In this document: positions 1 through 25,100 of the stretch, piece after piece
Position numbering within the stretch: position 1 is the stretch's first letter
How the letters are laid out: every line of letters starts with the position of its first letter
From: Polymyxa betae A26-41
Taxonomy: Eukaryota; Protista; Endomyxa: Phytomyxea
Assembly (NCBI GenBank): GCA_003693705.1
Contig: RBZT01000337.1
Span: 1-64,000 of the forward strand
Length of the DNA stretch: 64,000 nucleotides
Direction of reading: 5' to 3'
The notes under the pieces: generated by a model
Told to the model about the DNA's origin: nothing
What the model saw: the letters and a program-made list of their open reading frames with translations, nothing else
Database searches by the model: none
Translations under genes and position numbers: made by a program

Positions 1-3000
1 ATCCGCTCACTCTGCTACACCCAAAAAATCAACTGCTCACGCTGCTTCAACCAAGAAGTCAGGCACTCATGCTGCTACGGTTAAGCATTCCACGCGTAAG
101 CAAACTTCAGGCCATGCCAGTACATCATCGAAGGCAATTTCCTCAGGTCTGTTGGAATTGAGAAGCCTTCTGCAAACTTGTTAACTAAATTTCTTGTGCA
201 GGATCGCTTAATATCAGTTCATCAGCGCCCTTACCATCCGTGGTGAGCACACAGAATGCTACTTATTCCCCATCGTCTTCACTTTCCTCGAAGATCAGCA
301 GTTCCAAACTCTCCAACAGCAGTTTGTTGTCATCTCCAACGTCATCAATGTCGTCAGGAAATGCTACCTCTATTCCATCATCTTTAGTATCTTTAACAAA
401 TAGCTCTATCAAACCTTCGAATAGCGCATGGAACTCATCTCCAACGTCAACGAGCAATGCTACATATATACCATCGCCCTCAGCCTATAGCACTATCAAA
501 CCCTCTAACAACACGCAGCCATCATCGCCAACAACGAAGCCTACAGGAAATGTAACCTACATCCCAGGGCCTTCGGCTTCTGGAAGTAACAATTTCATAC
601 CATCGAATGGCACACACGCCTCCTCCCCAACGTCATCAAAAAATGCTACGTATATTCCGTCGCCCTCAGCTTATAACACTATCAAACCCTCTAACAGCTC
701 GCAGCCATCATCTCCAACAACGAAGCCTACAGGAAATGCTACCTACATGCCAGGGCCTTCGGCTTCTGGAAATAACAATTTTATACTATTGAATGGCACT
801 CACGCCACCTCCCCAACGTCATCAAAAAATGCTACATATATTCCGTCGCCCTCAGCTTATAACACTATCAAACCCTTTAACAACTCGCAACCATTATCTC
901 CAACAACGAAGCCAGGAAATGCTACCTACATGCCAGGGCCTTCGGCTTCTGGAAATAACAATTTCATACCATTGAATGGCACACACGCCTCATCACCATC
1001 GTCAGCAAAAAATGGAACATTATTTCCGTCGCCCTCAGCTTTTAACACCATCAAACCCTTTAACAACTCGCAGCCATCATCTCCAACAACGAAACCTACA
1101 GGAAGTGCTACCTACATCCCACCGTCTTCGGCTCTTGGAAGTAACAATTTCATACCCATAAATGGCACATGGTCGCCGACCATCATCGGGACCTCACCTC
1201 CTTCCCCGCCCAACTATAATCGTCGCTATTCACGTGCTGACTCTTTCGATTTATGCTTACTGTGTGTGAACAATTCGACCAATGGGACTGTACTCCTGAC
1301 GAATTGGATGAACGAGTTCAAAGGCCTCTTACCCGATTTCGTTTTGATCGTGTCGCGTTTGGCTAACGTTCCGCTTGATCAAGCTCTTGATAGGACCAAA
1401 AAGTTGCATCTGAGCTTGAACTATTTGGCACAGTCTGGCAGCTTGCAGCACAAATCGTTCCCTACTCTCAAGTACCTGTTAGAAATGAATGCTCAATATC
1501 GAAATGATGGCCTTTACGGATCCATTGCCCAGATTTTCTTCCAATTTATAATTGCTCCTCGTTACCGGTCATGTTCTCAGAAAGGTATTCATTTAGCGGT
1601 TTTGTTTCCAACATCTAGTTCAATTGTTATAGGATTTCCAACATGCGGTCTTAGCAATGGCAACTTATTCGACCCCACCAGTTGTTTATTGAGTAATCAT
1701 AGTTATGTTACCAAAGCTCAGTATTTGAATGATATCATTCATGGGACATTATCCTCTCCAGTTCTGTCACATTTCAATAAGAATAAGGTCAGTTCATTAT
1801 TTATCGGGGTCATAAATTCCTAATGCTAAGTGCGCATTTCAGGTTCGGAAAGATCTAAGTGATATCCTGAACAATAACAAGTTCAACGGATCCGAAATTG
1901 TTGATCATGATACCTTCCCTGAAGCTGACTGGATTCAGTCAGAGCTTCAACGCCTTCAACGTAAGGATTATCAGGAGTTGGGATGATTTATCTGACATAT
2001 TTGTAGTTGGAAACGCATCTATAGTGAGTCGTGCCTGGAATGATAGTCTGACCATGCAAGAACGTAGATACTGTGGTCCCAGTTCCACGTTCCAGCCTGT
2101 ACATTATCGGGAATATTTGTAAGGAGCTATAGCACATTCTCTATAAGATTGACCATCTGATTATATTGTTCGCTGACAGGAACGATACTGAGCTCGCTAA
2201 TCCGGTTTCGAAAGACCATATTCTCCAATGTTTGCAATCACGACCAATCGATCAAATTCGATATGATGTGGAACGGTCACTTCTATTCTTAATCAAGGAT
2301 GTAAAGTCTATTCCTGTTGAGAATGCTATTCGAGCTGTTGACGCCTATCTCGGAAGTAACTTAATACGGGCTCTTGACATTGCTGATTTCGCAAACTCGA
2401 CAAAGCTGGCATCGCAGCTTGATCACAGTCTTTTGTCAAGTCAAAATGCTACGTTTATTGCCAGCCGGCTGCTTCCTGTTTTGGCGTCCTCTTGCTATAT
2501 AATCAGAAAGTACCCAGCTGTTGCGAGTCCCATTTTGTCATTGAAACCTTTTCCATCCCCTACCCAGCCTGGTTATATGTTTCTGCAAGAAATTTCTTCT
2601 GAAATCATTTCCAAGTCGGCGGCATACTTCAGCCTCAGCAAGGAGAACACCATGGAATTGCCAAAATATGGAATCAGCCCGGACGTCTTCAATCGATCCA
2701 GTCATTTGATGTCGTCTCTGATGGCTTCATACATGAATACTGAGGAAACGATATCACATCTGGCGCTTCCATCTGTGCTTGAATGCATTCGTCTGCTGAC
2801 TGATGCCAATCCCCCCGTTCATCCTCTCATTGCTGCGGTATTCTGTGGTGAATTTTATCCATTTATCTTGCAGCTTACGGTAAGACATCCACATCACTGT
2901 AATTGTTACTGATTTGCTTTAAACTTAGGGACAAAATGTTGCTGATTTTCATCCTTCCTCTGAGCTCTGTATGCCACCAATGCCGGGCAATCAGCTGGTA

Positions 3001-6000
3001 TCACAGCTGCTAACTATTACATCGGGTAATGTTCGCCGAATTATCAATGGAAATATTCCTGTTCCAATCGAGAACTATCAAATTATGGCTCCAAATCCTC
3101 AAAGCTGCAATCTGACTAGATCGTCAAGCAGACTGACCGATGCTTTATCTTGCTCGTTGCGGTATCTTACCTCTAAGCCCGACATTGTAAAATCTTTTGG
3201 ATTGAAGTTACATTCGTTTCATTCGTTGTTTTCCAGCTCCATGTTACGATCCCAAGTGCGAGCGCCATCAAATGGCTGGTTACTGATTATGGCTTAAATG
3301 CTACAGAAATCGGGACCCTGACATTGGCTTATGACATGACTCTGAATCAGCTGTCACTTGGCTGCAGTGATGCTCGCGCTAATATGAATCCACACACATG
3401 GTTGTTTGCATGCAAATTTTCGGTGATCGCAGCTGAACTAATGTTCCTATAGTGTCGATACGAATAGATTTGCCAACTCCACAATGGGGACCGTTTCTCT
3501 GTTCAGCGGTAACCAGCGGAACGCCCTGAAAGCAATGTTCGTTATATGCTGGTAATCCTGGTATAAAATGCTAAAAAATTGTCCATTCAGGTTGGAATCG
3601 ATTTCCCCTTTCCCTGTGCCGAATTCCAATCGACTTCCTTCGAAAATGAACATGGCATTGCGGCTGGTGACAATGTCGCCTTCCTTCACAATGGACGTTG
3701 CGATGAACGCCAGCTCGATGATTTGGAGCAACTGGAACCAAATCGCAATTCCTTGTGAAAACCCTCAACCGTATGTTTCTGGATTGTTTTTACATTTAGC
3801 CTCTAACCTAATTCAAAAGCCCAAACACAAATGGACCTTTCCAGCCTCCCACGAATGGTCCTTTCCCCTCGAATGGTCCTTTCACGAATGGTCCTTTCCC
3901 CTCGAATGGTCCTTTCACGAATGGTCCTTTCCAGCCTCCAACGAATGTTCCTTCCCCAATAAGGTATCCTGTTTCGCGTTTTGACGGCCTTAGTATCTGT
4001 GCATTCTGCATGAATCTGACTGATATGACTGGAAACGACTTCTTCAATCGGCTTGAACAGCAACTCAACAGCACACTTCCAGCGCTAATGACGTTATTCG
4101 ATAATGAACCCATTTTCTCGCGCTCGAATCGAACCTATATCGATGCAGCTCGCCAGCAGCTCAGGAATGATTTTTCATACTTGCGAAACAATCTGCCTAT
4201 CGATTTACATCGAACAATTCCAAGCCAGAACTCTATCATGCAAGCTTTCTACTCCTCTCGTCCTCAACCACTTTCGCTGGATGATCGAAAGTTACTGGAT
4301 GCGTATGGAGAGGTGGTCGGTACTTTGTACCAAAGTCTGTCTGCGCGCTATTCACAATGCAGATCTAAAGGTAGGGCTTTCGACATTGAAATATGGCACT
4401 TTATCTTACTTTGGATAGGGTTTCCAACCTGTGGAAACCACCCTGGAAGTTTCTTCGATCCCACCACCTGTTTGTTGGCTGATGCGGCGCGAAGAAATTC
4501 GGTCCACAGTGTCACTCGGGGTCAATACCTTGACCGAATCATTAATGGCACGTTGGTGTTTCTACAAGAGCAATCCATCAACAATTCTTCAGTAAGTTCT
4601 TAAGGATGCATGTTCATAAACATTTTGTCAATCATTTTTATCTGCAGATTTTAGCCGGGCTGAAGGCGGCCTTGAAACAGAACAAGTTCGGGGTTGACTC
4701 AAACCACATCATTGACCGTTTCGAATTTCCTGAAGGCGACTGGATTGAGCAGGAGCTCCGACTGAGACAATGTAAGTTACCGATGATTGCCGATGAAATT
4801 GACATTTATTGTTGATTAGCACCATACGCAAAGGCTGTTGCTAATGCATGGAGTCGTCAACTGGCGATCTTTGATCAACAATTCTGCCTTGGTATCGTTG
4901 ACCCGAACATCATGTTCAAACCTGTTAATATTACGTCATTGTAATGTTCATCTGTTTGCGAGCTCAAAAACTGAATATTTTTAAGATTCAATAACTATCT
5001 CATTTCACCTGGATATAACACCCGTCAATGTTTGCGAGCAGTAGGGAGGGATCGACTTCGGGAGCAGATGGAGACCTATTTGCTCTCATCATTGTCTCAC
5101 CACACGTTACCCGGCATTGTTATTGGCAACGCCATTCGATCCGTCGATTCGTTTCTTTCCAAGCAATATGATTCTTTGGCAAATTTATCACTGAACGTTG
5201 GACCATTTCCCACTGTCAGTCAGATTTCAGTTTCTCTGAACTCATCATCGCTTCCTCTTTCGTCTGCATCCATTGTCGCCCAACAGTTTATGACGCTGAT
5301 GGCATCAACTTGCTCCTGGCGTGACCGAAATATCACACTGGGTGATCCAATTATGTACCGCGCATCCAACGTTTCTGATGTCGCAAAATACGTTCGCAAA
5401 ACGATATGGACAAAAATTGATGCGATTAAGCACCTGGTGCCTGTGTTTGCCTTTACCGAACTCGAGGACGGTTTTCGGCCTGAGGAACTGAACACGACGT
5501 CAGCTATCTGGTCGAGTATGTTGAGCTATATGGATAATTCTGATGCCTCAATCGCTACTTTGTCCTTACCATCAGCTGCTGATTGCATGCAGACGATCAA
5601 CGCTAAAACATTGCAGAAACCACTCAATCCTTACACTGTGGCTCTTTTCTGTACCGAATTGGCGTCTGCCATTGCATCAGGAGCAAATCAGCGAGACGCG
5701 CTGCCTATTGATGCTTTACAGCCCTCAGTTCAGCTCTGCTTACCGCCGGATTTGACACCTGTGCAGTTTTACAACAAAGTCGTCAATATTGCTGCTCAAG
5801 TTCAATCAAACATTTTATCTGGTCATATCAATGTCCCAATGGATCAGCAAAACAATTTCCCAATGCCCAGTAATCAACCATGGCCATCATCCTTCCCTCC
5901 CATGGGACCAATGCCAAGTAATAGCTGGTCGCCAATGGGTTCATTCTCTCCTACTCCTGCGCCAAGCGCCAGCTGGTCGCCAATGGGCTCATTCTTTCCT

Positions 6001-9000
6001 ACTCCTGCGCCAAGTGCCAGCTGGTCGCCAATGGGCTCGTTCTCGCCTACTCCTGCTCCTATGGGACCAGCACCATCCCCGAGCTTGTCGCCAAAGAGCC
6101 CGTCCTCTGCCACACCCTCTTCTGCTTTGTTCTCACAATCTATGCATAACCCTTCCTCGTTCCAGCAACCAACTGGAATGAACTCGTTTCTGCCGTTCCC
6201 GTCGAGCCAGAAACCCTTGCAATCCAATAGTCCATCTTCATTTTCGCAAGGCTCTTCGTTTACACCCTCGCCGATGGGTGGTCACACCCCTCCTCCCTTT
6301 GTCCAACAGAGCATGGCACCAACCGTCGGTGTTCCAGCCTATTGTGCTTTGGGTCAAACGCAAGCATCTCGATACGATGGTGCATTGCGGTGCGTTTTGA
6401 AATTTATTACTACATCTCCAGAACTGGTGGGTTTCATTGACTTTGCTCATATCTTTCTCATGAACTCATCACCTTGACAGCGTCACTTAATCATCCCTGG
6501 CGCTGATTCTATGAAATCCACACTCTATTCATATGGGCTACGAATGGATGAAATTAGTGCTGTAATATACTCCTATCAGGCAGCTGTATATCGGCTGGGA
6601 GCTGGATGTGTATATCTACCATCATTGCGTGAGACTGATCCTCTTTGGTAAGTTTGACATTTTTCTATTGATCTGATTCTCAACATTGCTTTCAGCCTCA
6701 AGATCGATCGGTTCTCATTTGCCAATAAGACAATGGCGCTGTTGCCGCCGTATTACGATTTCGGTCAACGCACTGTAATCTCAAACCTGTAACCTCAAAC
6801 GCCTACTTTTTTTTACATTCTCAACTGCATCCAGGCTGAGTTCTATTAGCCGTCAACTTGTTGATCCAGTCATGATAAAAGCTTTGCTACCGGAATCCCT
6901 TTTAGGGATCGGATTGCTAACAGCGTCACCTGGGTTGACTTTCGATGTTGCTGCTAATGCCAGTACCAGCATTTGGCAAATTTGGCGACAATTCGGAATC
7001 GACAGCTGTTTCAGTAATTTACCAGCGATGTAACATTTTGGAGTTTAACCCTTTATGTTTGTGAATAGTCAATTTAGGTCTCCTGCGCCACCTGTCTCAA
7101 ATGGTCCGATTGATCTGTGTCTGAATGTGTTCTCCAATGACATGTTCATTGGCTACACAATGAATGGCTTAGCAGCTGCACAATTCAGTCTTGGTAAATC
7201 CGATTTTCTCACAACTGAAGCCAATTCCAACCCGATGTCTGCAGGCTTCAACCTTGATCTATCTGCTGTTTCTCCGATTGTCTCCAGTGTTCTCAGCGTA
7301 CAGCTGTGGGCATTTGACTCTATCTTCCACCTAAGACGAAGCCGATTACCCTCTATAGATAATCTATCGTTGAGGTTTGGTCCTGATCTGAACGGGGATC
7401 GGACCAAAATGGGCAAAGTTGCTACACTAGTTGCGAAATCCTGGTCGATGATCCCAGAAGCACCATGTAACTCATTGTAAGCACAATTGCTTCTCAAATC
7501 TTGAGCTATCTAATGCTTAACTGAAGGCCAACATTTACTAATCCTCCGTTCCAACAACCGAAGCTTTGTTTCGCTGTGATGCCCACAAGTGACTTCATCT
7601 CGGCGACTGTTAACCAACTGTCGTCAATGATGATTCGAACGGGTTCTGTCGGTGTGGAAGATCCTGTTGCCGCAGCAAATTTCATGGGCAACTGGCTGCA
7701 AACTCAGCCGTATATCAAGCCTTTCCTCGCGCAAGGTAAATTCAAAACTGTATCTTTTTGATGGCGTTTTTGAGTCGTGCTGCTCAGGTCAATTCTACCT
7801 GTCTCCTGATCAAATTCCGCCTCCCGAACAAATATGGCAGTCATTTCAGCAAATGAACTTCACTAAAGACGCCGCCTCTACGATGACTGTATCGCTGTTC
7901 TTGACATGGGGATCAATGAGACAATCGGCATGTTTGAACTCGGCCCCGCCCGTCGTCTTCTACTGCTACATGTTCCCATTAGGAATTATACCGACCACAG
8001 GAATGCAACTTCCGTCCGGTTTGATCTTCGTTAACAACAAGGTTAGTTCTGGATGGTCAAATTCTGCTCATGATTGTAACTTGATTTCTAGATACCTTTG
8101 GAGTTGGCTCAGACTACACTAAATCAGGCTCTACCTGGTCTATTGAGCAATATTGGCGACGCCTTCAAAGTCAAAGACAATCTCCTTCCCTCCATTGACA
8201 CGTTAAGGAACGCATTTATGCCTCTTCTCGCTAACAATCAAACCCGGGCAAGTTCTCTAGCTGAAGCTGTCAATTTCATCTGGCGCAATCAGCCTCGCGC
8301 CGATTGCTCTACGCCGATTGGGTCTCCCCAGCAACTCACACAGCGGCCAGTTCAGCAGGTACCTGGAACTCTCCTCTTTTGCTTCTTATACTGAGCCTGT
8401 ATCTGCTTTAGCTGAATTTATGCGAAGTCCTTTCGGTTTCGGTGTACAAGCGGACATTGGGACGGTTAGCATTATCTTTGCAGGCAGAAACCTCGCTCGC
8501 TTCAGTTGCCTTGACCCCCTCACAAGCTTTGACATTTATTATGCAAGGAATACGACATCTTAACAACAACCAGTAAGCTCTGATCATGGTCACATTATGT
8601 TATGTTTTAACCGAGGTGACAGGTTCTTCTATTCCTCAATGCTGCCTGCGAAGGAAATATTCTTCGCTCAGAACGGCGCGACCTTGTCACAATCCGCTGT
8701 TTTATGGGGTTTGTTGTCAGATACATGGCAATCCATGGCGAACGATTGTCGAAAGTAAGCGCTCAACACCGATTTACATTAGATCGCTGAATCGGCTCCG
8801 TAGCTTATCACCCCTGAGCAATCCAGTTTCAGGCAGATTAGATGTGTCATATGGGGATTATTGCTTCAGCGATGATACCGGTCTTTCCTTCGTTCTTTCC
8901 ACCAAATCAAAACTGTTAGAGAAACTGACCTACGATATCCCCAATGTTGTCGCCTATGCCAACTCAATCGGTGGCAACTTGGATCCAGGAAGCACCCAAT

Positions 9001-12000
9001 TGATGTTCTCGAATGCCGTTAACAATGTCGTCAATGTTCTTCACTCATATAGTCTGGATGTCAATCAGGCATTAACGCAAGGCAACTATCTTCCAAATGA
9101 AGAACAAATGTACTATGCTCTTCTGAACGATATGGCTTCGGGCTCGGACAAACCAGACATCAAAGTTGCCGAGTTTGTCGCGAATCGCGTATGGGTTGTT
9201 TGGAACGAAAAGATTGCTGCCTGCAATGCTGTAAAAACCAAAAAGCAATTAGTCGAATCAAGCCCGCAAATCATCAAGTTACGGGTCGATGAAGCCGGAA
9301 TCAACTTCGCTCGTCTTACGATTGCCTTCAACGCCAGTATCGACCCATTCTCTAATGCGACAATTATTCCGCAGCCAATGATTCGCTATATAGCGTTTTA
9401 TGCTAACCAATCACGAATGTTCCTTGACAAGCCTATGGAGTCATCGTCGTGGATAACACCAGCTATTGGGTTCTGCAATCAAGCCAACTGCTCAGGTTTG
9501 TACGCTTTAAACACATGATTGATTCTTTGGCTAAATCTATTCTCAACAGTTTCTCAATTCGGTTTGAAAGACTCGACCACATACCAGATCTGCCTGAAAC
9601 TACGAAACCAATTTTCGGGAGTGGAATCAAACTCGACTTGCACTGAGATGGCAACCCGAATTGATCCTAATTCGTGCCGAGCTCCCATTTTGGCAGCTAG
9701 CAATCTTTGCAGCTCCGTCACCGGTGGAATTACCGTCTCCAGCAACAGCTTCGATGCCGGTAGTCAGTATCAAATGCTCAGTAACATTCTGTGCCATCGT
9801 GCTCCGGTTCCTTGTATGCAAGCCTTGGTCAACGTCTCGACCTGTATGGATCCACAACGCGATCCTTTGGCGCGTCTCATTCAAGACGATTGCACGGCTG
9901 CTCTTAATCTGCCATTGAACCAACCGTGTGAGATTGTCACAGCCCTGAACGCCACGTATTTCGCTCACTCTTGCAATAACCTGGGGATGCGATTCTCTTT
10001 TATTTGCCAACAAGTTGTTGCATGGCAATCATCTATGGCTCAGGCGTGCTCGACGTCCGCCTGCAATGTGACTCGATCATTCACTGATGTTTGCTCATCT
10101 CCATATCCGGTTGCCTCCTGTTCACCACAATGTCGTGACTCTATGAGAATTCATGCCGAATCTTGTATCGATCCGAAGATGCAGCTTGCAACTGGCAATA
10201 CGTTAACCGATCTAAGAGCAATCGTAAGCTGTGCGAGTATTCTTTCATCCATTGACTGATAACTTTTAGCGACAACGTCTGTCACAAGCGACAGTTGATT
10301 GTGATTTCAACTGCAGCCCGGGCCGAGTCGCATCGGTACTATCAAAATGTTTGATCACGGGAAGCACGTTTCCCATGGGCACGCCATGCTCTGCTTCATG
10401 TGCTACTGAGCTCGACCAATATTTGAACAGATGCGGCCGAAACTTGTTTGCATCTATCGGAATGTCTCAAAGCAGCGTAAGTGACAGTTTGTGGCTAGTT
10501 TCTTAAAAAAAAATTGAAACTCGACAGGTTTTGGCGTTCCAAAGCAAATGTGCAAGTGATAACGCTCTGGTGAATGTTCCAACCCCTGTACTTCAACCGA
10601 TATCTGGGACGATCTTGAGCTGGAATCCCATCAGCAATCCATCGCCCATCTTTTTCACTATTTTTAAAGGAAATTCTGATGGAATGGTGTCACAACTGAA
10701 TCCAGTACCGCTGTTCGGGGTAAACCAGTTCAATCTGGCCAATCTGATCCCGAATGGCAACACTGTTCATCTATTTGTTGTGGCGTCGTATAGATCTCAG
10801 TCTGGAACAATGTCATACAGTATACCATCATCAACTGTTACCTACACAGCACCAAAACTATCTGCTCTACAGCCTGCTCCTCTTTATGTCTTATCACGTT
10901 CATCATCATCAGCTATTATCGCTTTGAATGGTCTAGCTCCTGATGCTGACAACATTGTGGTTCGTGTTCTTCATACTCAGTCAGGCTCCTATCGGGTAAA
11001 CGTCTATTTCTTGGTCTCTAATTGCATCTTGCTGATTCTTATGTGTACAGGATATTATTATGCAGAATACGGGATCGATGAAGCTCACCATAGACTCTCT
11101 ATCACCACTAACGACGTATTCCATTCGCTGGCGATTCGATACAGCAACGATGGATTTGTCGCCTTTCTCAATGGAAACCAGATTCACCACATTCAGTATC
11201 GCTCCTGATACGCTGTCGCAAATCTCGGTTGCATCATGCTCATCTTCATCGTGCATAATTTCCATCACAACACCTGCTGTGGCTTCTGGCGGTGGTGCTC
11301 TTAAGAGCTGTCGACTGAACGTTGGCTCGTCTCTCGCTTTCGGATTCCCTTGTACAACTCCCTCGACGACAATGAACCTTACAATACCTCAGCTGACTCC
11401 ATCAACATCCTATTCAATTCAAGGATTTGTTCGAGACATCTACGACGTTGACAGCTCTGGATCTAGCACTGTTGTTGCGACAACATCTGCCAAGCTTGCG
11501 GCTGTGACTTCTTTCCAAGCTGCAGATCCCACCAATCGAGATAACGCCTACGGAGTGGGAGACACGCTTACAATCGACTTTGACAGCAATGCACAGAACA
11601 CTGTCCCCTATATCTATTCTATTGTTCCAAATACTGGACTCATTGGACGGCTCTACAGCAATTTGTCAGTGTCGACTTCTTGGCCCTTACAAACTCGTGT
11701 CATTCTGACGGCTACGGGAGCACCATTCGATGTCGTACCTCTTCCTGCTCAGTCTTGTTCTTCATCAACACCGCAACAAATCGGCAGTCCTCCAACACAG
11801 GCCTGTATCACATTAGGCGGTAACTTTGGTGAATATGTTCCGACTCTGGTAATTATTTTCTTCCTGTTTGGTAGAGCTCACTGACTGCTTGAACAGCCTC
11901 AAACAACTCGTGTGAACGTTGATAGCACCAAAGTATATCTGTTCAGTAACAGTGTTGTATCCCTCTATCAAGGAACTGTCGCCTTGTTGAAGTTTCTGGC

Positions 12001-15000
12001 TTTCTCATCCAGTTCGAAAGTGACTGGGCATCTACCAACAACAATGTTGAATGTTAATGCAGTTACAAGGTCTGTGTTGCTCCTGCAGGTTTTTTTAACC
12101 ATTAACCGAATCTTGATTTCAGTAACGGTATTCTCATGTATGGCGCCTCAACTGCATCACAATTGTCGTTTTCGGTGAAGGCGTCACAACTGATATCGCA
12201 GCTGAAAGAGTTGAAGTACACTGGCAAGAAACGCTTCCGCGGATCAGATGCCATCAAAATCACAGTTACAAGCCAGAATGGCAATACTCTCGCTTCTATC
12301 AATGTTGCTATGTTTGTGGTCCAAGTCAAAGTATGTCAACTTATCTATACTTCAAGTTTCGTGTGCTGATCGCTAATAGGAACAACCATCCATCAACATG
12401 ACCACGACGGCAAAATACAAAGCGAATCGCTGGGTGAATCTGGCACCGATTCAGGTTGACGCCTATGACGCCGAGAACGGAATCGTCGAGGTTTGATGAA
12501 ACTTTCTGCTGCGAGCAACATCATTCATTGTTGATCGTTTCAGGTCCAATTGGTCGCTAATGAGGCTGATCAGACACTGCCTGCTGGAACTCGCAACGCC
12601 AGAATCAAGTTCGTTTCCAGCAACCGAAATTCGACGGTGACATACGCGCCTTCTTTCGGCACCGAATCTCGACAGGTTGTCTTTGCTGTGAGTCTTGATA
12701 TAGCGACTGTGCTGAATTGGAACACAGCTGATCGTTCGCGGACCTCTCGCCGATGTTCAAACGGCCTTGGGAGGAATCGCCTTCCAGACCACCGAATATG
12801 GAGCTGTGATTCGTAACGGTCTTAGTGTTCAGATTCAAGATATATTCTCAAACGTTCCAACCTACAAAGATATTGCACGAAGTGCTTTGCTGATCAACTT
12901 GGATCCGGCCTGTGATGAAGCATTGCCTTCAACATTACTCTCGGCACAATTCGCTTTCATTGGCCAGAAGATTGCTGTAGAGCTCACTTTCAATGGTGAC
13001 ACGTCTCTTATTTATGACCTCTGGGCTGTCATTAACTTCGTGGCTGTAGGAACGACTGGCCTGCAAGCTCGTCAAACTGTCGATTGTGCTTTGGTAATAA
13101 GAGCTCAATCTCTGTCATTGCTTGGTCGAAATCCGGCATGTAAGGCGACCAGCACATCTTCTATGGAAGTGGTTCTTGGAGATTCATGGTCAGCCTCTAT
13201 CAATGATACAATTAGCATTGTGCCACGATCATTACGAATATGTGCAACTGGCGATGCGTTCGCACAAGGACAAGCTGTCCTCACCGCTCCCAGCGAGATC
13301 CGACGTCCTTCTATTCAATCTATTGTGGGAGCTACAAATCTGGCCTCAGGACAAGATCTAAGACTCACCGCTTATGCTATCAATGGATTCGGTCGAGCAT
13401 TTACATGTTACTGGACAGCTACCAATTATCTCGTTATCACTCCTGATCCTCGTGGTTCATGCTCGGTTACGGTCAGAAAACCGCTACACCTTTCCAACAG
13501 TTATTAATGGTTATTTCTGCAGGCGTTATCTAGCAATATGAACGCGGGTGATTCATATTCTATCAGCTGTATTGTGAAGAACGCATTCGGTCAAGCCAGT
13601 TTAGAGAAAGTTCTGAACGTCAACGTGGCAAGTGATCCAGTTCCCATTGTTTATGCTGTTGGTAGCACCGATATCAGTGTTATGAGAAACTCGCCATCCT
13701 TTACTTTGAAGGTCGGATCTGATGTTCCATTCAAGCAAGCCGTTTATACATGGGCTGGAAGCTCGTTGCCATCATCTGCTCAAGATCGGCGTAACTTCAT
13801 AACGGTGCAGCCGTCAACATTGACGGTTGGAGCCACCTATTCATGGTCATGTTTTGTATCTCGAGGCCGAGTTAATAATTCAGTGGCATTCTCTGTCACG
13901 GTTGCATCATCGCCTTTAATCGCAACTATAGCGGGAGGGCTGAAGCGACAGATTTTCGCCAATTACGCCCTTCTTCTGGATGGCTCCAAGAGTACCGATC
14001 CGGATGTTGGTTCTAACTCAGCACTGAGCTTCAACTGGGACGTATTTGATGAAGTTGGAGATGCTGCAACTAATCCATCCGGGGCTTCTTTGACACTGCC
14101 CTCTACTTCGACTTTATCTTTACCAGGACAATCATTAAATCCAGGTAAGCGAATGATCTCTCTCTCATCAAAGGTGTCTAATATTTCTTTCAGGACTGTA
14201 CAGCGTTTACTTGACAGTAACTGATGATAATACCGGTCGATCTGAATCAGCTCAGACCCTGTTGGAAATTGTGTCATCGCCAATTCCAAAGGTCACGATT
14301 CTTGGGGCTCCTGGTCGAATCAATCCGTCCAGTTCGGTCTCGGCTATGGCCAGCACTGTTATTGTTCAAAATGATGGTATGGATGATATTCTAGCGCAAT
14401 GGATTAGAACTTATATTTGGGATATCTAGGCAGTGAGATTCCAGGCTGGCAAATGACATGCTCATATAGCTGGACAATGCAGGGTCAATCAACAAGTGGA
14501 CAAAGTGTTCCTATTGGATTTGGTCAGACTATGTGTATCGGTGGTGCAGCTTGTCGTCCGTTTGTGTTCTCCAGGTTTGTTATACTACTGGATATACTAC
14601 CACCATTTGCTAAATAGCTGTTAGTGGTGATTTGGTTCGGTTCACTGCAACTGTCTCATGCGATGGATTATCTGCAGCAGCTATTGCTTACTTCGATACC
14701 GCTGTCAACTCACCTCCATCAACTGGATCTTTATTACTATCTGCTAGCAATGTGACAAGTGATACACCTGTTACTCTTACTGCTGCTAATTGGTTGGATG
14801 ATACCACACTTCAGCTCAGATACACCTTTGGGTCAGTATTCCCGCAAGGCTCTTGCTCTTATCTAATGAGTGTTTTATAGATTCTTCAAATTACTTCCTG
14901 CTACTGGAACTTTCCAGCGCGTTATTGTTAGCTCTCTTTCAACACAGCCAACCGCATCAGTTATCTGTCCTGCTGGACGTTGTGTTGTTTTCGTACAAAT

Positions 15001-17344
15001 CTTCGATGATGAAGGTGCCTACACGGAAGTAACCGGGACCGTCATGTCTCTACCAGCGGTGAAAGAATCCTCTGCCATTGTTTATGCTGGGTCTGAATAC
15101 CGAGTCATTAGGTTGTTACATTGCAGAATGTCATTGAACGTATCGCTAATGCAACATGTGACGTCATTATGAATATGGTGACGACTGTCAATTCTAACGA
15201 TACTCTCGTTACGATTCAGCTGAACAAGGCGTTCAGTGCATGTCAGACATCAGTAAGCCCAAGTGTCATGTTGGATAGTACATTGGGAATGCCAGTATCA
15301 CCAACACTCACCGCTACCGAAAGCAAAGGTCGGTCTTTTGAAAACCTATCGTGCGCTCTTTCACTGAAAAATTCTAATGTTTAGCAATTCTATCGAACGC
15401 CGTCAACATTGTAAATGAACTCGATCCGGATGTTCGCTACAAGCTATTCCTTATGTTCGATCAATATGCTACATCCAGCTCTCTATCCAACCAACGTCGA
15501 CTGTTGGCGATTACTTCGAATCCAGATACAAGCTGTCAGTTCATCCAAACAATCTCGCTCGGTCGTCTCATTTATGCTTTTTTCAGTGTTTGATCGATTT
15601 TCAAACGGTGTTGCTGTAATTAAGGCTCAAAGTTCATCTTTGACATTACCAGATCAGGTAAACGATTACGAGTTTGTTTCCGGGTAATGTTCTGATTTGT
15701 TGTTAATAGTATGATTTCTTCCCCGCTTATGCAAACTCGTCCACAACAACCCGTCGATTCCTAGCTCGTACAAATCCGCGCTCATACACATTCAATGTAG
15801 CAGCGATGTTCTCTTCGAGTCCATCTTATTCGTTCACCATTAACATTCCTTCTGCTTTCTACCAACAAAACAGAGCGGATGATGCCATGCTTTGGGGAAT
15901 TGCGGAAATCAACAATGATTTCACTCAGAGTAAGCTGACCTATTCTCAACATTTGCGAGTTTATGCTCATATTTATCAGGTATTGCAAATACCCCAGATC
16001 TGGTTGCACCAGTATCTCCTGTTGTTCAGTTCGGTGTCATGAACCCTAATTTCGCTCTAATCACTGAAACACCATCATCTCCAGTCATCATCAATTTCCC
16101 ATTATCAGGGTCGACATGTACATCATTGCCATGTTATGTTGAATGTCGTCAATTCCTCAACTCGACACGAAACTGGAATGTAACCAGCACTGTTGTCACC
16201 ATGAATCAGACACAATTGACTCAAGTAAGGCTCTCCATTCTATTGGAAATGCAACCGAAATTAAGATAGTTATTAGGTCAGCTGTGCTGTGTCATCATCA
16301 ACTGGATTTGTTGCAGTATACAAAACTGTTTCAAGTTCATCGTCGGCACCACTATCTGTAAAGTCTTCAAACTCAACATCAAACGCTACGAAATCAACCA
16401 CACGAACAAGCCCAGCTACCATTCCACAAGCTTCAGTATTGGAAGGTCCAACACCAGCGCCTTCATTCAGTCAATATATAACGACGACTCACGCTCCTGT
16501 TCAAGCTCTAGCAGTTACATTGCGGCTTATGCTCAACTTTACTCAAGTCAATGCTGCTTTTACATCGTTCGCCACATCATTTGCGAACTCAATATCAACT
16601 GCCATTGGTATTCCTGCAAGTCGTATCAAAGTTATTTCCATATCTGAAGGTATGCTCTCGGTTAGATAGTGGATTTTGCATGTAATGACTTTGGTTCCAG
16701 GAAGCGTTATCGTCAGATTCGTAATTTTGCCAGATGTTACATCGTCATTATCTCCTTCGGACGTACTGCAACAGATCACAAATCAATTGCAAGATCCAAA
16801 CAGTGCCTTGCGAAGTGACACAAGTTTGAACGTTGATTCCAACTTCACCCCGATTTCAGATACGGTTATTGATTGTGGTGACGGGACTTGGAGATCATCT
16901 TGTACGGGGTCATCACCAGCACCAACCCCAGCTCCTACTGCACAAGACACAGCAAAAGGTTTAAATCCGGGAGCAATAGCTGGTATTGTCATCGCTTCGG
17001 TCGCCTTCATCGGAATTGTCATTATACTTTTACGACGAATGCGACGACGTCGTCTTGCTCGAAAACTAATTGAAGAGCCTCCTGCCCAAATGGCGCCAAA
17101 CCCCATTCTATATGTTCAACAATCACCTGTTGGTATTCAACCAGTAATGCCTCAGGCTGTAGGTGTTGGTCAAGGAATGTTTGTTGGTTCCCAACCTGCA
17201 TTCCCGGTTATGCAATCTAATCCCGTTCTTGCATATCCTGTTTTGCAACCCAATATGGCTGTTGGCGTTCCAGTAGGACAGTCACCGGCTGCACTTTATG
17301 TGGCTCAACAGGTACCGGCACCAAATCAGCAACCCAATCAATGA
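1..17344 (+). CDS. Giant multi-exon (~40-45 introns) single-pass type I membrane protein, polycystin/REJ-like adhesion receptor; 5' end outside window
   Basis: The junctions I checked join + strand exons in frame through ~50-nt GT-AG introns (e.g. 147-201, 6789-6834, 7030-7078, 16650-16700), and there is no intergenic gap. REJ signature LLDGSKSTDPD...FNW (~13970) and VNSPPSTGSL...AANWLDD...LRYTF (~14705). FN3-like repeats ~10580-11480. SEA-like domain ~16510-16830. TM AIAGIVIASVAFIGIVIILL followed by RRMRRRR (~16973-17055). Stop at 17344. Confidence 0.8.
440..1170 (+). repeat. Coding tandem repeat, ~186 nt (61-62 aa) x ~4, Ser/Thr/Pro/Asn-rich mucin-like
   Basis: Unit NATYIPSPSAY(N/S)TIKPSNxxQPSSPTTKPTGNxTYxPGPSASGxNNFIxxNGTHAxSPTSSK recurs at ~456, 642, 828 and 1011. 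Confidence 0.95.
3829..3955 (+). repeat. Coding micro-repeat (NGPF)n linker
   Basis: aatggtcctttc units. The frame continuous with the 4010 ORF reads TNGPFQPPTNGPFPSNGPFTNGPFPSNGPFTNGPFQPP. Confidence 0.85.
5923..6066 (+). repeat. Coding tandem repeat 48 nt x3 (SWSPMGSFSPTPAPSA)
   Basis: agctggtcgccaatggg... repeated at 48-nt spacing. Confidence 0.95.
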
Positions 17345-17739
17345 GTCCTTTCTATCATCAAACACTCAATAAATGACTTTTTCGTTTGTGAATGATTGGA
17401 GTGTGAAGTTCTATCCATAGGCTTGAATCAGTTTGAATTAATGAATGCTTCTTGTCAAAAAAGCCAGCGCAGCTGCCGCCAAATCAAAATGTGATTGCTC
17501 CGATTCCGCATGCTCTTCGTGGAAAAGAATATCATATCTCGAGATATTCCATTCATTGCGAGTTGACTTGGAGCAAAATGTCAGAATTATATACTCACGA
17601 AATGGCAAGCAATGAATGGGCGATCAATCACCAAGGATATCGTGAGCGCCTAATCGGATTGCATCTCGGATTGAACGTAAATTAACTCGTGAGGTTGACA
17701 CCACCACCAAATATCCTCCAGGTTTTTGAAGCATATTTA

Positions 17740-19760
17740 TTATTTGCAAAGTTCCTGTAACTTCTTCAGTCCTGGAACCGTAGAGAAATCAACCTTCTTC
17801 AATGACTTCTTAACGGCAGCGCGGATGTCAGGACGAGATTCCACCAGAGGAACCAAGATCCAAACAGCTCGTGATTTCAATATAGCTTGCAAATTGGTTA
17901 AGCAGAAATCAGTGAACACTGGATGCATTAATGATTGCGAGGAAGTACAGAGAGACTTGAAAACACGATGGGCGACTGGATGGGCAATAAGGTGCTCTCC
18001 GTCTAAATCTGTGGAATACCAAATTTAGCAATTAATGAGAATGCCTGTTAGAATACGAACCTGTTAAATCCCCCTGAGATAAGCAAGATACCAAGGCTTC
18101 GAGATAGTCCTTTGCTGCATCCTGTACATCATCGTTCATCTCCATTGCACATTTCAAGCAGTTCTCAAACAATCCCGATAACGAACGATCACGTAACATA
18201 TTCTGGAAATAAATCAGAAAACAGCCACATCAATGAGATATCCACTTACACTAGCTAATAGGAAATTATCTTTCAATGTGGAGATCATTGCTGGAACGAA
18301 ATGCTTCAGGTTATCGTTCCGTCGAACATCGTCTGATTTCTTGCTCATCGACTCAACAGTCTTCAAGATGCCACGTTCTGCAGGTGTAAAATATCGAGCT
18401 TGACCAGGTGCAATAACTTGCAGTAGGACTTTACTTCCAGCAGGTGATTGCATTAAATCACAGATCTCTGGTAATAGTTCATTAATGACACATTTCTGTA
18501 GCATGACCGCATCATCAATAATCGTTAAAGCCTTGGCTACAGCCAAATATCCCTAAACAATAAATGACTTTAAATTCGATTTCCTACGACTATGTATGAA
18601 TACATACATCACTGTCTTTGGCCATGATGACAACTTGGCCTTTCCACGACTTGATAATCGTTTTACGAAGTTTCGGGGTCGAATAGTCCAGCATAATGCA
18701 AGTAGCAATAACCCCATCAAGTGTAGCACATATCTGTAGAGTATGATCTTTCAAGGATTCAATTAACGATTCTCGATCAGTGACATTCGTTAGATAATGT
18801 CGTAACAATGTATGAAACAATGATAGTTGCATAGTTCCTTTAGCAATGCATTTATCAAGGAACATGCGAACTTCTCCTAACAGAGTATCACGTTTTTTTT
18901 CATCCAGTGATTGTAATAGTTCTGGCAATGAAGGTGCCGGTTTTGAAGTATCACGAAAGACACTGTTGTAGAATTAGTTGCTTAAAGGGTGTCAAGAAAT
19001 CCAATGGTACGAACCTGTGTTCTTTACCATAGAATTCAAACAATAGATCATTCTTCTGGTTGGAATTGCAAGCTGATCTCCAGGCGAGGTCAACAATCTT
19101 AAATGCGACCCGATGTTTGCAGAGTCGGGCGATATTTCCTTTCAGCTCAGAGATGATCTGCGCCTGGATTGAACGGGATCCATAACGAAGGATCTTTAAG
19201 ATAACATGATAACCATACTGGTTCATGCATAACTCCAATACATGCCTAACAGTCAATCAGATATCTACAAGATGCTGCCAGTGCATTAAGATACCCTTTT
19301 AAGCCTTCAGCGATAACGATTCGTTGGGCGTCACTACCATATTTGATACAGGACTGAATCAAACGGCTGACGTCGTGCTTCAGGCAGATCTGATTGATCA
19401 ACGAGCTAATCTCTCTTAAGACCGCCTCGACACGATTGATACGTTCCTCGGGAGAAGCGTTTTTGATCGATTCCGAGCCCCAAGCAACACGTGCTGCAGT
19501 AATCACATTGTTGTGAAGGCGACGAGATTTCCGTTCCCGTAACAAAGCTTTCTGAGTACTGCGGTTAGAGCTGGATTTTCGTTTATCACCGGCTTTGGTT
19601 TCAGGGTCTTCAGCGTCCAGCGAATTGTCTTCGTCTTGTTCTTCAACTTCTTCTACTAGAGACCAATTTAACACATTGCTGGCTCATGAGCTGAAGACAA
19701 AGTACCTTCCGAAGGAATAGATCCTTCGTCAGAATCCTCAATAAGTTCGATTTTCGCCAT
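17740..19760 (-). CDS. PUF6: Pumilio homology domain family member 6 / PUM3 (Puf6, CPL domain), multi-exon
   Basis: Acidic/basic N-terminus. KHDVSRLIQSCIKYGS, QYGYHVILKILRYG, EFYG, KLRKTIIKSWKG and IIDDAVMLQK motifs are typical of Puf6/PUM3. ATG at 19760. Confidence 0.88.
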
Positions 19761-20834
19761 TTGTCGGAAAAGAAAATCGTCAAACTTTGGAAGTCCCTGA
19801 TTTTCCAAATTCTCCAGGTGCAAGATCCCAGATCAATTCAATCACGCAGTCCGTACAATTGTTTTTATTGCCGTCGCGGCAACCTTTTAGGCAAAAACTT
19901 GAATTTCAGTCCAAAATTTAGAGGTCGCGAAGCTTTTTTTATAAATTTTTCGTTATTGACAACGGAAGACAACGGAATTGTCCGATGGGGTTTCTTCGCT
20001 GCATGACCCACTGCAAACCGCCATCTTTCACCATAAACATCGATAAAACGATCTGAAATTTAAGCGAAGCGCCGTACTGTCGGTAAGGAAACCGATAGTG
20101 CTCGAGAAACCACCCAGTTCAACCCTGTCCAGGAGCGTAGATGTTTTTCGCTGACGCTTGTTCAGATGTCAAGAAGACGGAGCGACATGAAAGTGTTGCG
20201 GCGTCATCAGCTGGGTCTCACTCTCACAGCAACAAGGTCCCACCCATTGCATGGAGGAGGCTGCGCAACAACAAGGTACCACCCACCCATGACCCATTTT
20301 ATGGAGAAGGAATCCTCATACGCTGAGGGCTGCACTGGAGGCTGCGCGTGAGGCTCCGCACTGTTGAATTCTGATTTTCCGTGCATGTATAAATAGATGG
20401 CCGCGGCGGTATGTACTGCATCTTTGTAGAAAATTTGGTTTTCTGTTTTTTTTCTACCGAATGTACTTAAGATTAAAATCGTACTGTAGCCTGTCAACTG
20501 GACAACACTAAACGCAAATACATGATAACAGTCATTGATTTACACTTTTTGGCATTATCAGATTGTCAGCATCAAAGCCAGTTCGGGCGATATTCGAAAG
20601 TTATCAGTTCACCATTGACAGGTTTCTTCATCTCCGCCTAATCGAAAACGAGTATCCAAAACGAGTGAAAGTACAGAATGATTGAGAATTCCATTACTTG
20701 ATGTGACAGAAGTGCTCTTGCTTGCTTGCGGACTGTTGGGCCTACGATAACAGTAGGCTGCGACCGACAAGTCGTGGTGCTGTAGAGGGTGACTACTGGT
20801 TGGAGAGGGAGGCCTTCACATTTCTCATGGCTAA

Positions 20835-22094
20835 ATGGCCCAGCCTAATGATGATGTCAGTTTAGTCGAGTTAGTCCATTTGTGGTTGTGTAATCAGGGC
20901 TGACCAGCGTAGGCAGTTCCATGCCCTGAAGAAGGTTCGCGAGCAGGCTCAGGCGGAATTCGAGAAATCCGAGCAAACGATTCGAAAATTGCTGAATGTG
21001 CTGGATGGTCGGATGGTCGAATATTGTTCAGAGCGGTTTCGTCTGACATAGGGGTTAGAGACGGACTCGAAAGGCATCACGGCTTTGTATGCGACCGATG
21101 CAATGCGGCGACAGTTCCTGTCAGCTTTCGGAACGTCTACTGATGAGTTCAGGTTAGACTTATAAGAGTATTTTTTCGAATTATAACTGTTTAGACATGC
21201 TGCTTCACTAGCAAGTCGTTTGCAGTCTTTCATACAAAGCAAAACCTCATCGCGACAACGTAAATTGCACTTTGCTATCACATAAGATTCTGATCTATTT
21301 GTACAGCCCGAATGGCTTCCAGAGTGCATCCGCCACGTCCATATGGGACTCCTGTTATTCGAGCTTCAGAAGAGTGCGCTTCCTTCGTTGAGGTTGACGT
21401 GATCTGATACGTTCACAGTGACATATGGACCCATAAACCCAGCGCGCCTTTTGAACCTGGATCTCAGGTCGCTGCACTTATAGACGAGTTTTCAGAACCG
21501 AATTTATGGATACTTGCTCAAATAAGATCATTCGATCATGAGCGCTGCCGATACACAGTTATCGATAATGAAACTGACGTTGCAGATGGGATTGTGCATC
21601 CAGAATCGGCAAAGTCTCTTTTCCTTTGCTTTTAATCGCAATGTTCTGATAAGTTCACAGGAACTATCTCGTTGATTGTGACAGGGTTTTATTGCTGCCA
21701 TCGCTATCTAATATTCCGGTTATATCCCGTCATGACTTTCGAAAGGACGAATGCGTTTTAGCCATTTTCCCGCAAACCACTGTTTTCTATCCTGCTACTG
21801 TAGTATCAGGGCCCAAAAAGGTCTTGTGTTGTACTAGTATAATTGTGGATTGCATCAACATTGCAGTTGTCGTAGGGTTATTATGTATTGCAATTCGCTG
21901 ATGACGAATGCAATCAGCGCCGAATATCTAGTGCTCACGTTGTTCCTCTGCCTGTATTGCACCAAAAAAATTTAGGAATGTTTTCTCTTATTTTTCATTT
22001 AATAGGCCCGGTATTACAATGCAGTCGACAAGGTTTCAATCTGAATACTTGCCTGATTAAGCCGTCATTTTATATCTCTAATCCATACTTGTAA
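20835..22094 (+). CDS. SGF29: SAGA-associated factor 29 (tandem Tudor), multi-exon; ends approximate
   Basis: N-terminal coiled coil, then FEPGSQVAAL...WILAQI...RYTVID and FRKDECVLAIFPQTTVFYPATVV...YYVLQFADDE. Confidence 0.85.
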
Positions 22095-22119
22095 ATTTGT
22101 CAACATAATGTATTATTAA

Positions 22120-25100
22120 TCAATCGCCCAATGGTCTTGGGTCAAGTTTCAGTTCTCGAATAGACTTCTCTTCAGTATCTTTCATCAAACTCGATGCGCA
22201 ATCGTTGGTTTGTCGCAGAGGTTTATCGTTTACCTCTTCAGCTATTTCTGGATAATCAATTACGTCTGTGAGTCTGGATTGATCATTGACTCCCTGCGAA
22301 ATGCCTGCAATTAAAGAATGATATCATTATGAATTCGTAAATGAGGGGATTATATTATACCAGAATCCAGCTGTGATTTGGGTTTAACAGATTTCGCAGT
22401 TACTTCGATCTGAATGCTCTCGTTGTTTAACTGGATGCTATTTCTCAGTGTCCCACCTCGTGCCATCATTATCGATCGCCTTTTCTCTCCGCGTTCTTTG
22501 ACCAGCTTTTCTATTGGTGCCAGAATTTCTTTATACAGATTAGACTAGCGCAAACTGGATTGTAATCACAATACCTGGAGCAAATGAAAGAAATTTTTGG
22601 AACGAATCATGAGAGATTGTTAAGAACAAGCACGGCGTAAGTGTAGCCACAGTAGCGTTTCTAAATTTTCGACTCTGTTCATAAAACGATAAAGGAATAA
22701 CGGTTGTAGCGCATTACCTTGGCTTAACAGGATTTAGTAAGGCTGCTTCACCAAAGAACTCCCCGACTGATAGCGTTCCAATTTCCATTCCCTGATGTGT
22801 TACCTTTATACTATATCAAATACATGTCACAGGAAAACACGGATTTGATGTTACCTGGACTGTCCCGTTCAAAATTAAATATAAATGGTCGCCTTCATCG
22901 CCTTCTGAGAAAACAGCAACATCTTTCTCCATAGATTTATACACCAACAGTGACGCCAGAAGCTCCTTTTTTGACCACTGTTTTTTCAAAAGATTACTGA
23001 TTGGAGTAATTCGTATCTGGAGGAGAACATACAGGCTTGTTTTCGCGAAGAGCATCGAATAACTTGAATTTCTTGAGTGTGCCAACCGTTCTCCTCAGGA
23101 TTAATGACGTGAATGTTTCTGTCAATTCGGGAGCTATCTTTCGCAAACGTGTAAAGGCATGATACGATAACGAGCATAACAAACAATTGTCCACGCCTAA
23201 TAAGCAGCCAGTTGCACTTAATTCACTCAAACGCTTAACGAGCAGGAATCGCTTACAAGTAATTGTAGCTGTCCGAGGTGTGTCCAGAATAAGAGAAATT
23301 TCGCCAAACCAGTCATCGGCTTTAAGTGTTCCCAACGCAATCGTGTCGTATTCGTTAAGGATTGTTACTTTAAGTTTCCCTGTGCCAGCAATGTCTGAGA
23401 CAGTGGCTTTTTATGAACTATTGGATTACCTTCGACGACAATATAGAAAGTACGATCCATATCGCCCTCACGGCAAACAACTTCACCGGCTTGACATTCG
23501 CGGAACTGAAATAATAGTCCCAATAAAGAAATCTTAGACCACTGATTGCTAACAATTAGCGCCAATGTGCAATTATTTTTGAAACCATACAGGCTTATTT
23601 TCTTTGAGTCCAGAGAAGAATGCTAGCCTTGAAAGCCACGTTGAGTTGCGTAAGTTGACAGTTTGGTCGACACGGCGGGCGAACTCTGGGGCAAATTCGC
23701 TGAATCTCGGATAGTTTGTTATTGGCAACCTAATCACAGTTGATGAATGATGTTCAGCAACAATAAAAAAGGATCTGAACTTCATAAGCAATGTTTTTTC
23801 GATTGTAGTCACCGTACTGGTAAATGATTTACCAATATCGCCAAACCAATCATTCTTGTCCAGGCGATTGCCGCTCTCAGGGTCTGAGTCCATACCAATT
23901 CCCGATGAGACTGACACCTTCAGTAGCAAATTCAAATTCGGCAAAGCATCTAGCAGTGACAAAAAGTACCGATCCGGAAACGATATGGTATATTCCAGTA
24001 GATGGTTCACCTACTTTATAGACCTGAGTAGTTTCAGGGAATTCTTCGAACTAAAACTATTTAGATACCAGTCAATCAGCATGCTAAGGGAATCTACCTG
24101 AAACAGGGACGCGAATTTAAATAGTCGATCCTGATCGAACTGCACAAGTGGACCAATTTCTTTGACCTACGTCCTCTTCATTTTGTATGCAGAGAATCGA
24201 TCAACAAGCTGAACCTTCAAATTGGCGAAGTATGGTAGGACTTTGAGAACATCGGCAACAGTTGTCAACATAGAATTTATGTAGTCTGGATGGGTTTGCA
24301 AAGAGGGTAGGATGCGTATAAATTTGAGAAAACTGTCTTTGGGAATAAAAGCAAATGTTGATGGTCTTATCGTGTATGCATTCAGTATATGACTGCAGCG
24401 GTTTGTCATGTAATAACAACCTGGATAAAATGTGTATGTGATTTCAACAGACGGAATGAGTTTGGAAAGCATACCGGCAATGCCGCCACGATTTAGTGTT
24501 GAAAGTGGAGTTTCGACTCCTTCAGGCGAGCGGTACGAAAATCTTACTGCCCCTTCAATGATAATATAGGCACCTTCAGCAACAGATCCCTAAGGGATAA
24601 TGATTATTCTGATAAAATTACTCAGTAGTGTTTTGTACTTGTGCCCATATTTGTTCATGCTCTTGAAAGACAACCGCTCGCATCATAGTTAACGCCTGAT
24701 CAGAAAAGGACCACTGAGCTCAATATCAGACATGTAAGTTGCCACATACAAAGCAGATCTCGGAATCATTGAGTGGCTGGAAAATTGGCAGCTCTTTGAG
24801 GATAGCAATCTTTGACTTAACTGAAGCTGATCCCCATGCGGCAGTGATACCCTTTTTGTGCTAATTCGTAATATCAGTATGCATATATCCCTAAACGAAG
24901 CTATTTACAGCTTTCATAGAAGCGCCTCCTGATGGCTTCGCTTCAGTTTGACTTTCTTCGTCTTTTTCTGATCTAGGAGGAGTCTAATTCATGATGTGTG
25001 AATGGCTTTATGCCATAAGATACCTTTGAGAATCCTCGTCATGTTCGGATCCCATAGAGTCTTTGAGATGACTTATGCATTCCGGGACAATCCTGCAGAC

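Follow-up and report, generated by a model that had tools for sequence, protein, structure and literature searches.

We describe here a gene at positions 2-17344 (plus strand) of a 64,000-nucleotide (nt) stretch of DNA (the window) that begins contig RBZT01000337.1 of Polymyxa betae A26-41 (assembly GCA_003693705.1), a plasmodiophorid root parasite of sugar beet. The region is one continuous reading frame and is predicted to encode a single membrane glycoprotein of type I, with 5,038 residues or more. From the outer tip to the membrane, the predicted chain carries a mucin-like part, a long orphan region, a Cys-rich block, an FN3-like region, a REJ module, a GPS-like site and a SEA-like module beside the only transmembrane helix. 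On balance, we lean toward reading it as one giant adhesion or coat glycoprotein whose outer chain could be released under force, and not as a polycystin coupled to a channel.

On the plus strand, positions 1-17344 break up into stop-free pieces whose frame keeps changing, and the short gaps between these pieces start in GT and end in AG. A reading made earlier from the letters alone (the sequence-only reading) had proposed that some 40 open reading frame (ORF) fragments splice into one frame, and this was confirmed by a dynamic-programming model of splicing whose parameters were learned first from the codon usage of the region and later from its splice sites. The model gave one stop-free frame of 44 exons and 43 introns, with 15,114 nt of coding sequence (5,038 codons, positions 2-17341) followed by a stop codon at 17342-17344. 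All 43 introns are GT-AG and 39-83 nt long (median 51), and in this region donor sites follow the consensus AAG|GTAAGT and acceptor sites show a T-rich tract and then CAG. As a control, the plus strand scored +1083 with 13% of it intronic, the minus strand forced through the same model took 89 introns and scored -606, and a shuffle scored -952. The retrained splice matrix added an optional in-frame intron of 48 nt (4371-4418) inside exon 10; this 44th intron was rejected because the paralogous block described below has residues aligned there. The next sizeable ORFs downstream lie on the minus strand, from 18214. Throughout, profile, sequence and fold searches were run exon by exon or per open piece, while the joined translation was used for length, hydropathy, composition and coordinates.

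Independent support for the gene model comes from a relative and from an internal duplication. Searching 1.84 billion representative sequences by HMMER with exon 33 as query, we found one close relative, the protein P0001 (1,287 amino acids, 46% identity), which is a single ORF on L006, a 16-kb contig of 68% GC from a public run. By tblastn, 14 of exons 24-42 (24, 26, 27, 29-36, 38, 41 and 42) lie in order on L006, and exon 28 has no match there. Exons 26, 27 and 29-36 map to L006 2389-6426, mostly inside P0001, and since they are colinear in a stretch that is largely one ORF, the introns between them are supported. Within the gene itself, exons 2-9 and exons 10-16 represent an old duplication with matching exon boundaries. 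The large exons align at E 3e-18 and 2e-12, and the small exons 3, 4, 7, 8 and 9 pair with 11, 12, 14, 15 and 16 (z 9-14, with 4.3 for exon 8 versus 15); exon 17 also resembles exon 20 (z 10.1). Protein homologue searches with exon 44 and with the C-terminal ORF of L006 gave no match, nor did a metagenome scan. Another candidate relative, P0002, was dropped as an unrelated 64-residue repeat protein.

Along the window, the predicted features and what marks them are as follows.

2-146 (+): exon 1 (partial), His/Lys/Ser/Thr-rich repeats; 30-nt period at 5-61 by Tandem Repeats Finder.
202-1205 (+): mucin-like Ser/Thr/Pro/Asn-rich region with four 62-residue tandem repeats at 434-1169; composition and Tandem Repeats Finder.
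1206-3770 (+): block A, predicted helical and with Cys caps, from the last part of exon 2 through exon 9; pairs with block B, no Pfam family.
3820-7029 (+): block B, exons 10-16; pairs with block A, predicted all-alpha.
7078-9495 (+): further region with no recognized family, exons 17-23; likeness of exons 17 and 20, weak L006 match at the end of exon 23.
9550-10476 (+): Cys-rich block; 23 Cys in 293 residues, kept in L006 (E 4e-20).
10528-11848 (+): FN3-like beta region, exons 26-27; sub-threshold Pfam fn3, kept in L006 (E 9e-43).
11897-13471 (+): conserved region before REJ, exons 28-32; exons 29-32 colinear in L006 (E down to 8e-53).
13523-15328 (+): REJ module, exons 33-38; PF02010.
15385-16321 (+): post-REJ region ending in a GPS-like motif; motif read and register comparison.
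16322-16468 (+): Ser/Thr-rich linker.
16469-16918 (+): SEA-like or KIAA0319-C-like membrane-adjacent module; alignment to paralogues and a paralogue model.
16970-17032 (+): single transmembrane helix; hydropathy.
17033-17344 (+): poly-Arg stop-transfer (17033-17053), Pro/Gln/Val/Gly-rich cytoplasmic tail and stop codon (17342-17344).

Most of the outer architecture proposed in the sequence-only reading held up, with FN3 as a partial case. The REJ module is real by profile: PF02010 matches at 53 bits (E 2.8e-14, cut-off 25) over positions 44-176 of the profile, another match at 14641-14853 covers positions 289-359 (E 7e-4), and a six-frame search gives 50.1 bits. The Cys-rich part stands on its composition, with no Pfam family above cut-off in the block, and no Pfam family was found in exons 28-32. 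For FN3, there is a Pfam fn3 (PF00041) signal in both the window (17.5 bits, E 0.0047) and P0001 (21.8 bits, E 2.2e-4), yet both fall below the cut-off of 25 bits, and an hhalign test of the region was not significant; related library proteins have true FN3 upstream of REJ. The mucin-like N-terminal part was likewise recovered, as the first 250 residues are 51% Ser, Thr and Pro with 14 N-x-S/T sequons, and the 62-residue repeats show a period of 186 in 4.0 copies (88% match). Pro/Thr/Ser-rich tandem repeats combined with one transmembrane helix, the hallmark of a transmembrane mucin, are thus both present.

Blocks A and B and the third stretch together span 1206-9495, approximately 2,400 residues. 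The helical-repeat region of the sequence-only reading was substantiated as a duplicated one, with 'helical' a prediction for 1206-9495, and on this modelling the orphan helical region would make up about 40% of the protein. No Pfam family matched in 1206-9495, the helical blocks have no match elsewhere in this genome, and an Atlas feature search with the helical module returned chance-level rows only and no relatives. Block B also contains two repeat linkers, one at 3848-3932 of perfect or near-perfect 33-nt NGPF-type coding repeats, and the other a Pro/Ser-rich insert with 16-residue repeats at 5923-6056, made of perfect or near-perfect 48-nt SWSPMGSFSPTPAPSA-type coding repeats. In our alignments these short repeats have no counterpart in the paralogous exons of block A, and they are likely recent expansions.

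Downstream of REJ, the chain reaches a GPS-like motif that is split by an intron at 16225-16276, with its last part at 16277-16321. The motif reads C-x-x-F/W...W...C-x-x-S-S-S-T-x-F, and L006 has the same pattern with S-L-S-T. Ser-Ser occupies the position of the GPS His-Leu, and neither the window nor L006 has the His-Leu found at GPS sites that cleave. Two comparisons put the site in the expected register, one with a GPS that Pfam recognizes in a paralogue on contig C892 (BLASTP E 0.31) and one, by hhalign, with four canonical GPS regions (E 0.39); neither is significant. Pfam GPS (PF01825) gives no match in the window and matches two other loci of the genome. In a language-model Atlas feature search, the L006 counterpart of the region lies nearest to GPS clusters (score 0.92, 18/30 matches), which we treat as a lead only. 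Judging by these residues, the site, if it is a GPS, is probably inactive.

The C892 paralogue belongs to a second REJ gene of this genome, at 15300-27960 on the minus strand (loci L001, L004 and L005). This gene has repeated units of ~300 residues and a complete REJ match (81 and 67 bits), followed by an EGF domain and then the Pfam-level GPS, which reads H-A-T and not H-L-T. About 5 kb beyond its end, with other ORFs between, ORF pieces at 9852-10722 (minus strand) read like a candidate voltage-gated-like ion-transport channel.

The membrane-adjacent module is interrupted by a phase-1 intron (16650-16700), and the codon that it splits, G|GA, encodes the Gly in G|SVIV. Taken separately, its two halves, in the last part of exon 43 and the first part of exon 44, match an intronless module of ~130 residues that occurs in at least 23 other places in this genome, and both can be aligned to 22 intronless paralogues. 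The module loci (L014-L038) lie, often clustered, on contigs C872 (34.8-50.4 kb), C244, C841, C857, C459, C121, C675, C598, C390, C255, C132 and C955. The family members that were checked carry a SUEL-lectin or CUB head, a Ser/Thr-rich stalk, the module and a single transmembrane segment, and the family looks like a large set of single-pass lectin-type surface receptors.

A model of the paralogue L014, built with a 24-row alignment, has a predicted local distance difference test score (pLDDT) of 94 and a predicted template modelling score of 0.86, and shows a beta-alpha-beta-beta-alpha-beta order plus one strand. In an exhaustive structural comparison the top match to this model was the Trop2 C-domain, with Z 8.5 and a root-mean-square deviation (rmsd) of 6.6. 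MUC16 SEA domains matched at Z 8.0, 7.5 and 7.3 (rmsd 3.2-3.7 over 99-109 residues), and the next matches were CELSR1, SorCS2, TMPRSS6, dystroglycan, the membrane-adjacent domains of cadherin-23 and protocadherin-15, IA-2 and GPR126, those of TMPRSS6 and GPR126 being SEA domains. KIAA0319 proteins filled 4 of 10 rows of an Atlas shape search (TM-score 0.53-0.56), and Pfam PF23620, the KIAA0319 C-terminal domain, matched 2 of the 24 module sequences (E 3e-4). By this modelling, the module belongs to a lineage-specific family with a SEA-like fold, the fold being that of SEA-like membrane-adjacent domains, while a place in the SEA sequence family was not found. The SEA assignment of the sequence-only reading is therefore supported only in part, by the modelled fold, and fails at the level of sequence families. 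The window copy differs from every paralogue in its beta2-beta3 hairpin, which is shorter by 3-4 residues and has the sequence G-S-V-I-V; the G|SVIV motif is found only here and is absent from the 22 paralogous copies. Cleaving SEA domains, such as that of MUC1, are cut at G|SVVV.

The transmembrane helix is the only 19-residue stretch in 5,038 residues with a Kyte-Doolittle mean of at least 1.6 (peak 3.07). It is followed by RRMRRRR and a Pro/Gln/Val/Gly-rich tail of 103 residues, for which no family match was obtained, and the gene on L006 ends alike. This agrees with the single helix, poly-Arg run and ~95-residue tail of the sequence-only reading. Its claim that there is no channel part also holds, as neither PLAT nor PKD_channel matched in any open piece of the window; the parts that mark polycystin-1, PLAT together with 11 transmembrane segments or a channel-like part, were not found. 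To present the missing channel as unusual was, however, an overstatement. The public library proteins P0015, P0017, P0035 and P0085 pair a REJ-matching region with one transmembrane-like segment, and the absence of a channel part is not new.

We can sketch how such a protein might work. Outermost would stand a heavily glycosylated mucin brush, and below it a spacer of ~2,400 fast-evolving, probably alpha-helical and disulfide-capped residues, derived in part from internal duplication. The Cys-rich block and the FN3-like and REJ beta modules would follow, then a GPS-like site that would have decayed and has probably stopped cutting, and then the SEA-like domain at the membrane, whose tight G|SVIV hairpin may cut itself. 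The whole would serve in adhesion or as a coat, a long molecule with a non-covalently attached outer chain that force can release, as in a transmembrane mucin, and it would not act as a channel-coupled polycystin. A bolder extension is that in this lineage a REJ receptor lost GPS self-cutting and gained, beside the membrane, a copy from the lineage-specific module family, and that this copy alone evolved a self-cutting hairpin of SEA type, one mechanical 'fuse' being replaced by another of independent origin; we regard this as speculative and rather unlikely.

Several observations weigh against the releasable-glycoprotein reading. The first base of the window is the start of the contig (C804) and lies inside exon 1, and a search of the other contigs of the assembly for an upstream continuation, by DNA and by protein, found none. 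The gene model thus lacks the N-terminal end with its start codon and signal peptide, and 5,038 residues is a minimum. Exons 17-23 are joined by the splice model alone, except for the end of exon 23, which has a weak alignment to L006 (E 0.011). A two-sequence AlphaFold model of the helical block is all-alpha at low confidence (pLDDT 50.8). With regard to the module, Pfam SEA (PF01390), run against one exon at a time across the entire genome, matched nothing at E<=10, the window copy being searched as the halves left by its intron, and it matched none of the 24 module sequences. Likewise, a profile of the module family matched none of the PDB sequences, PDB sequence searches came back blank, and Foldseek with the module model gave generic ferredoxin-like folds only and no SEA. 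The fold itself was modelled on paralogue L014 and not on the window's split copy, and Z values of 7-8.5 are in the range that the comparison tool calls middling, those under 8 possibly reflecting a common arrangement. S-x-hydrophobic follows the hairpin throughout the family, which leaves the Gly and the short loop as the only features peculiar to the window copy. Finally, the gene end on L006 (7186-8181, plus strand) has the GPS-like site, a Ser/Thr/Pro linker, the transmembrane helix, a basic run and a Pro/Gln tail without the SEA-like module; it follows that either the Polymyxa line gained the module or the relative lost it.

The module may instead be only a structural stalk of the KIAA0319 C-terminal type, with the Gly-Ser of the hairpin a coincidence and the protein staying a single chain. 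We consider this a serious possibility, if somewhat short of an even chance. Such a stalk would agree with the 22 paralogous copies that do without Gly-Ser, the PF23620 matches and KIAA0319 shape-search rows given above, the silence of the Pfam SEA profile, and a relative that dispenses with the module. It accounts less well for the alignment of MUC16 SEA to the modelled fold, and for a window hairpin that is both shortened and, as G-S-V-I-V, a match to the G|SVVV of MUC1.

Other explanations concern the extent of the gene. If the region held several neighbouring genes, such as one for a secreted mucin/helical protein and then one for a separate REJ receptor, this would explain why the N-terminal half has no detectable counterpart on the L006 contig beyond the end of exon 23. 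Against such a division, no coding gap exceeds 83 nt and every gap is bounded by GT-AG, there is no in-frame stop and no second strongly hydrophobic segment, and on L006 coding sequence of the same strand is already open where the contig begins, upstream of the Cys-rich block; we find it improbable that the region holds more than one gene. More improbable still, to the point of being hardly credible, is the idea of a receptor of the polycystin-1 type, with a PLAT and a channel-like part that were missed or lie further on. Here REJ followed by a GPS-like site is indeed the order of a polycystin ectodomain, but the stop codon comes 103 residues after the only transmembrane helix, the next ORFs are on the other strand, the L006 gene has the same kind of ending, and no PLAT or channel family appears in any piece. 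The single giant adhesion or coat glycoprotein remains our preferred reading.

Plasmodiophorids are not culturable without a host and, to our knowledge, hardly anything is known of the molecules at their surface. A giant surface protein that may combine adhesion and shedding parts would be a candidate for the zoospore or plasmodium coat, and the at least 23 putative receptors that share the membrane-adjacent module offer a handle on the surface repertoire of the parasite. REJ, a GPS-like remnant and a SEA-like module in one predicted chain would also provide a case outside animals and, if the cleavage is true, would bear on the origin of self-cutting membrane-proximal domains.

Compared with known systems, the window protein shares with polycystin-1, PKDREJ and sea-urchin REJ a REJ (PF02010) in a very large ectodomain and a Cys-bearing motif at the place of the GPS. 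It has one transmembrane helix where polycystin-1 and PKDREJ have 11, no PLAT, PKD repeats, lectin or leucine-rich repeats were found in it, and its GPS His-Leu is replaced, with a profile that does not recognize the site. In its single-transmembrane form it recalls suREJ1, reportedly described by Moy and colleagues in 1996. Among the single-pass proteins from other eukaryotes in the public library, REJ is confirmed by Pfam in P0015, P0017 and P0035, and P0085 was identified by its match to the REJ exon. Resembling the layout predicted here, P0017 combines FN3, REJ and one transmembrane-like segment, and P0035 combines REJ, GPS and one such segment. All four are 1,600-3,200 residues long with at most ~34% identity over the REJ exon, and none was seen with a mucin part, helical blocks or the membrane-adjacent module. 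Another unusual anchoring of REJ is found in the library protein P0018 (2,119 amino acids), with REJ, EGF and TSP1 repeats and a tetraspanin-type end of four transmembrane segments.

With MUC1 and MUC16, the window protein shares a Ser/Thr/Pro-rich tandem-repeat tip, a predicted membrane-adjacent beta-alpha-beta-beta-alpha-beta domain beside one transmembrane helix, and a G|S-V-[VI]-V hairpin. It differs from them in that its module has no sequence-profile relation to SEA, and in that more than 3,500 residues of other domains separate the mucin part from the SEA-like part. It also resembles KIAA0319 and KIAA0319L (the adeno-associated virus receptor) in having PKD/REJ-type beta modules, then a domain next to the membrane whose predicted shape is similar (at the TM-scores given above), and then one transmembrane helix. 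No PKD of the KIAA0319L type (none at E<=0.1) or MANSC matched in the window pieces, and PF23620 is reached weakly and by two paralogues only, which leaves the window protein outside that family. Our literature search found no paper joining REJ and SEA. What sets the window protein apart is its size, an orphan and predicted helical 40%, and the apparent union of REJ with a mucin tip, a GPS-like site that has decayed and a SEA-like module bearing a cleavage-type motif.

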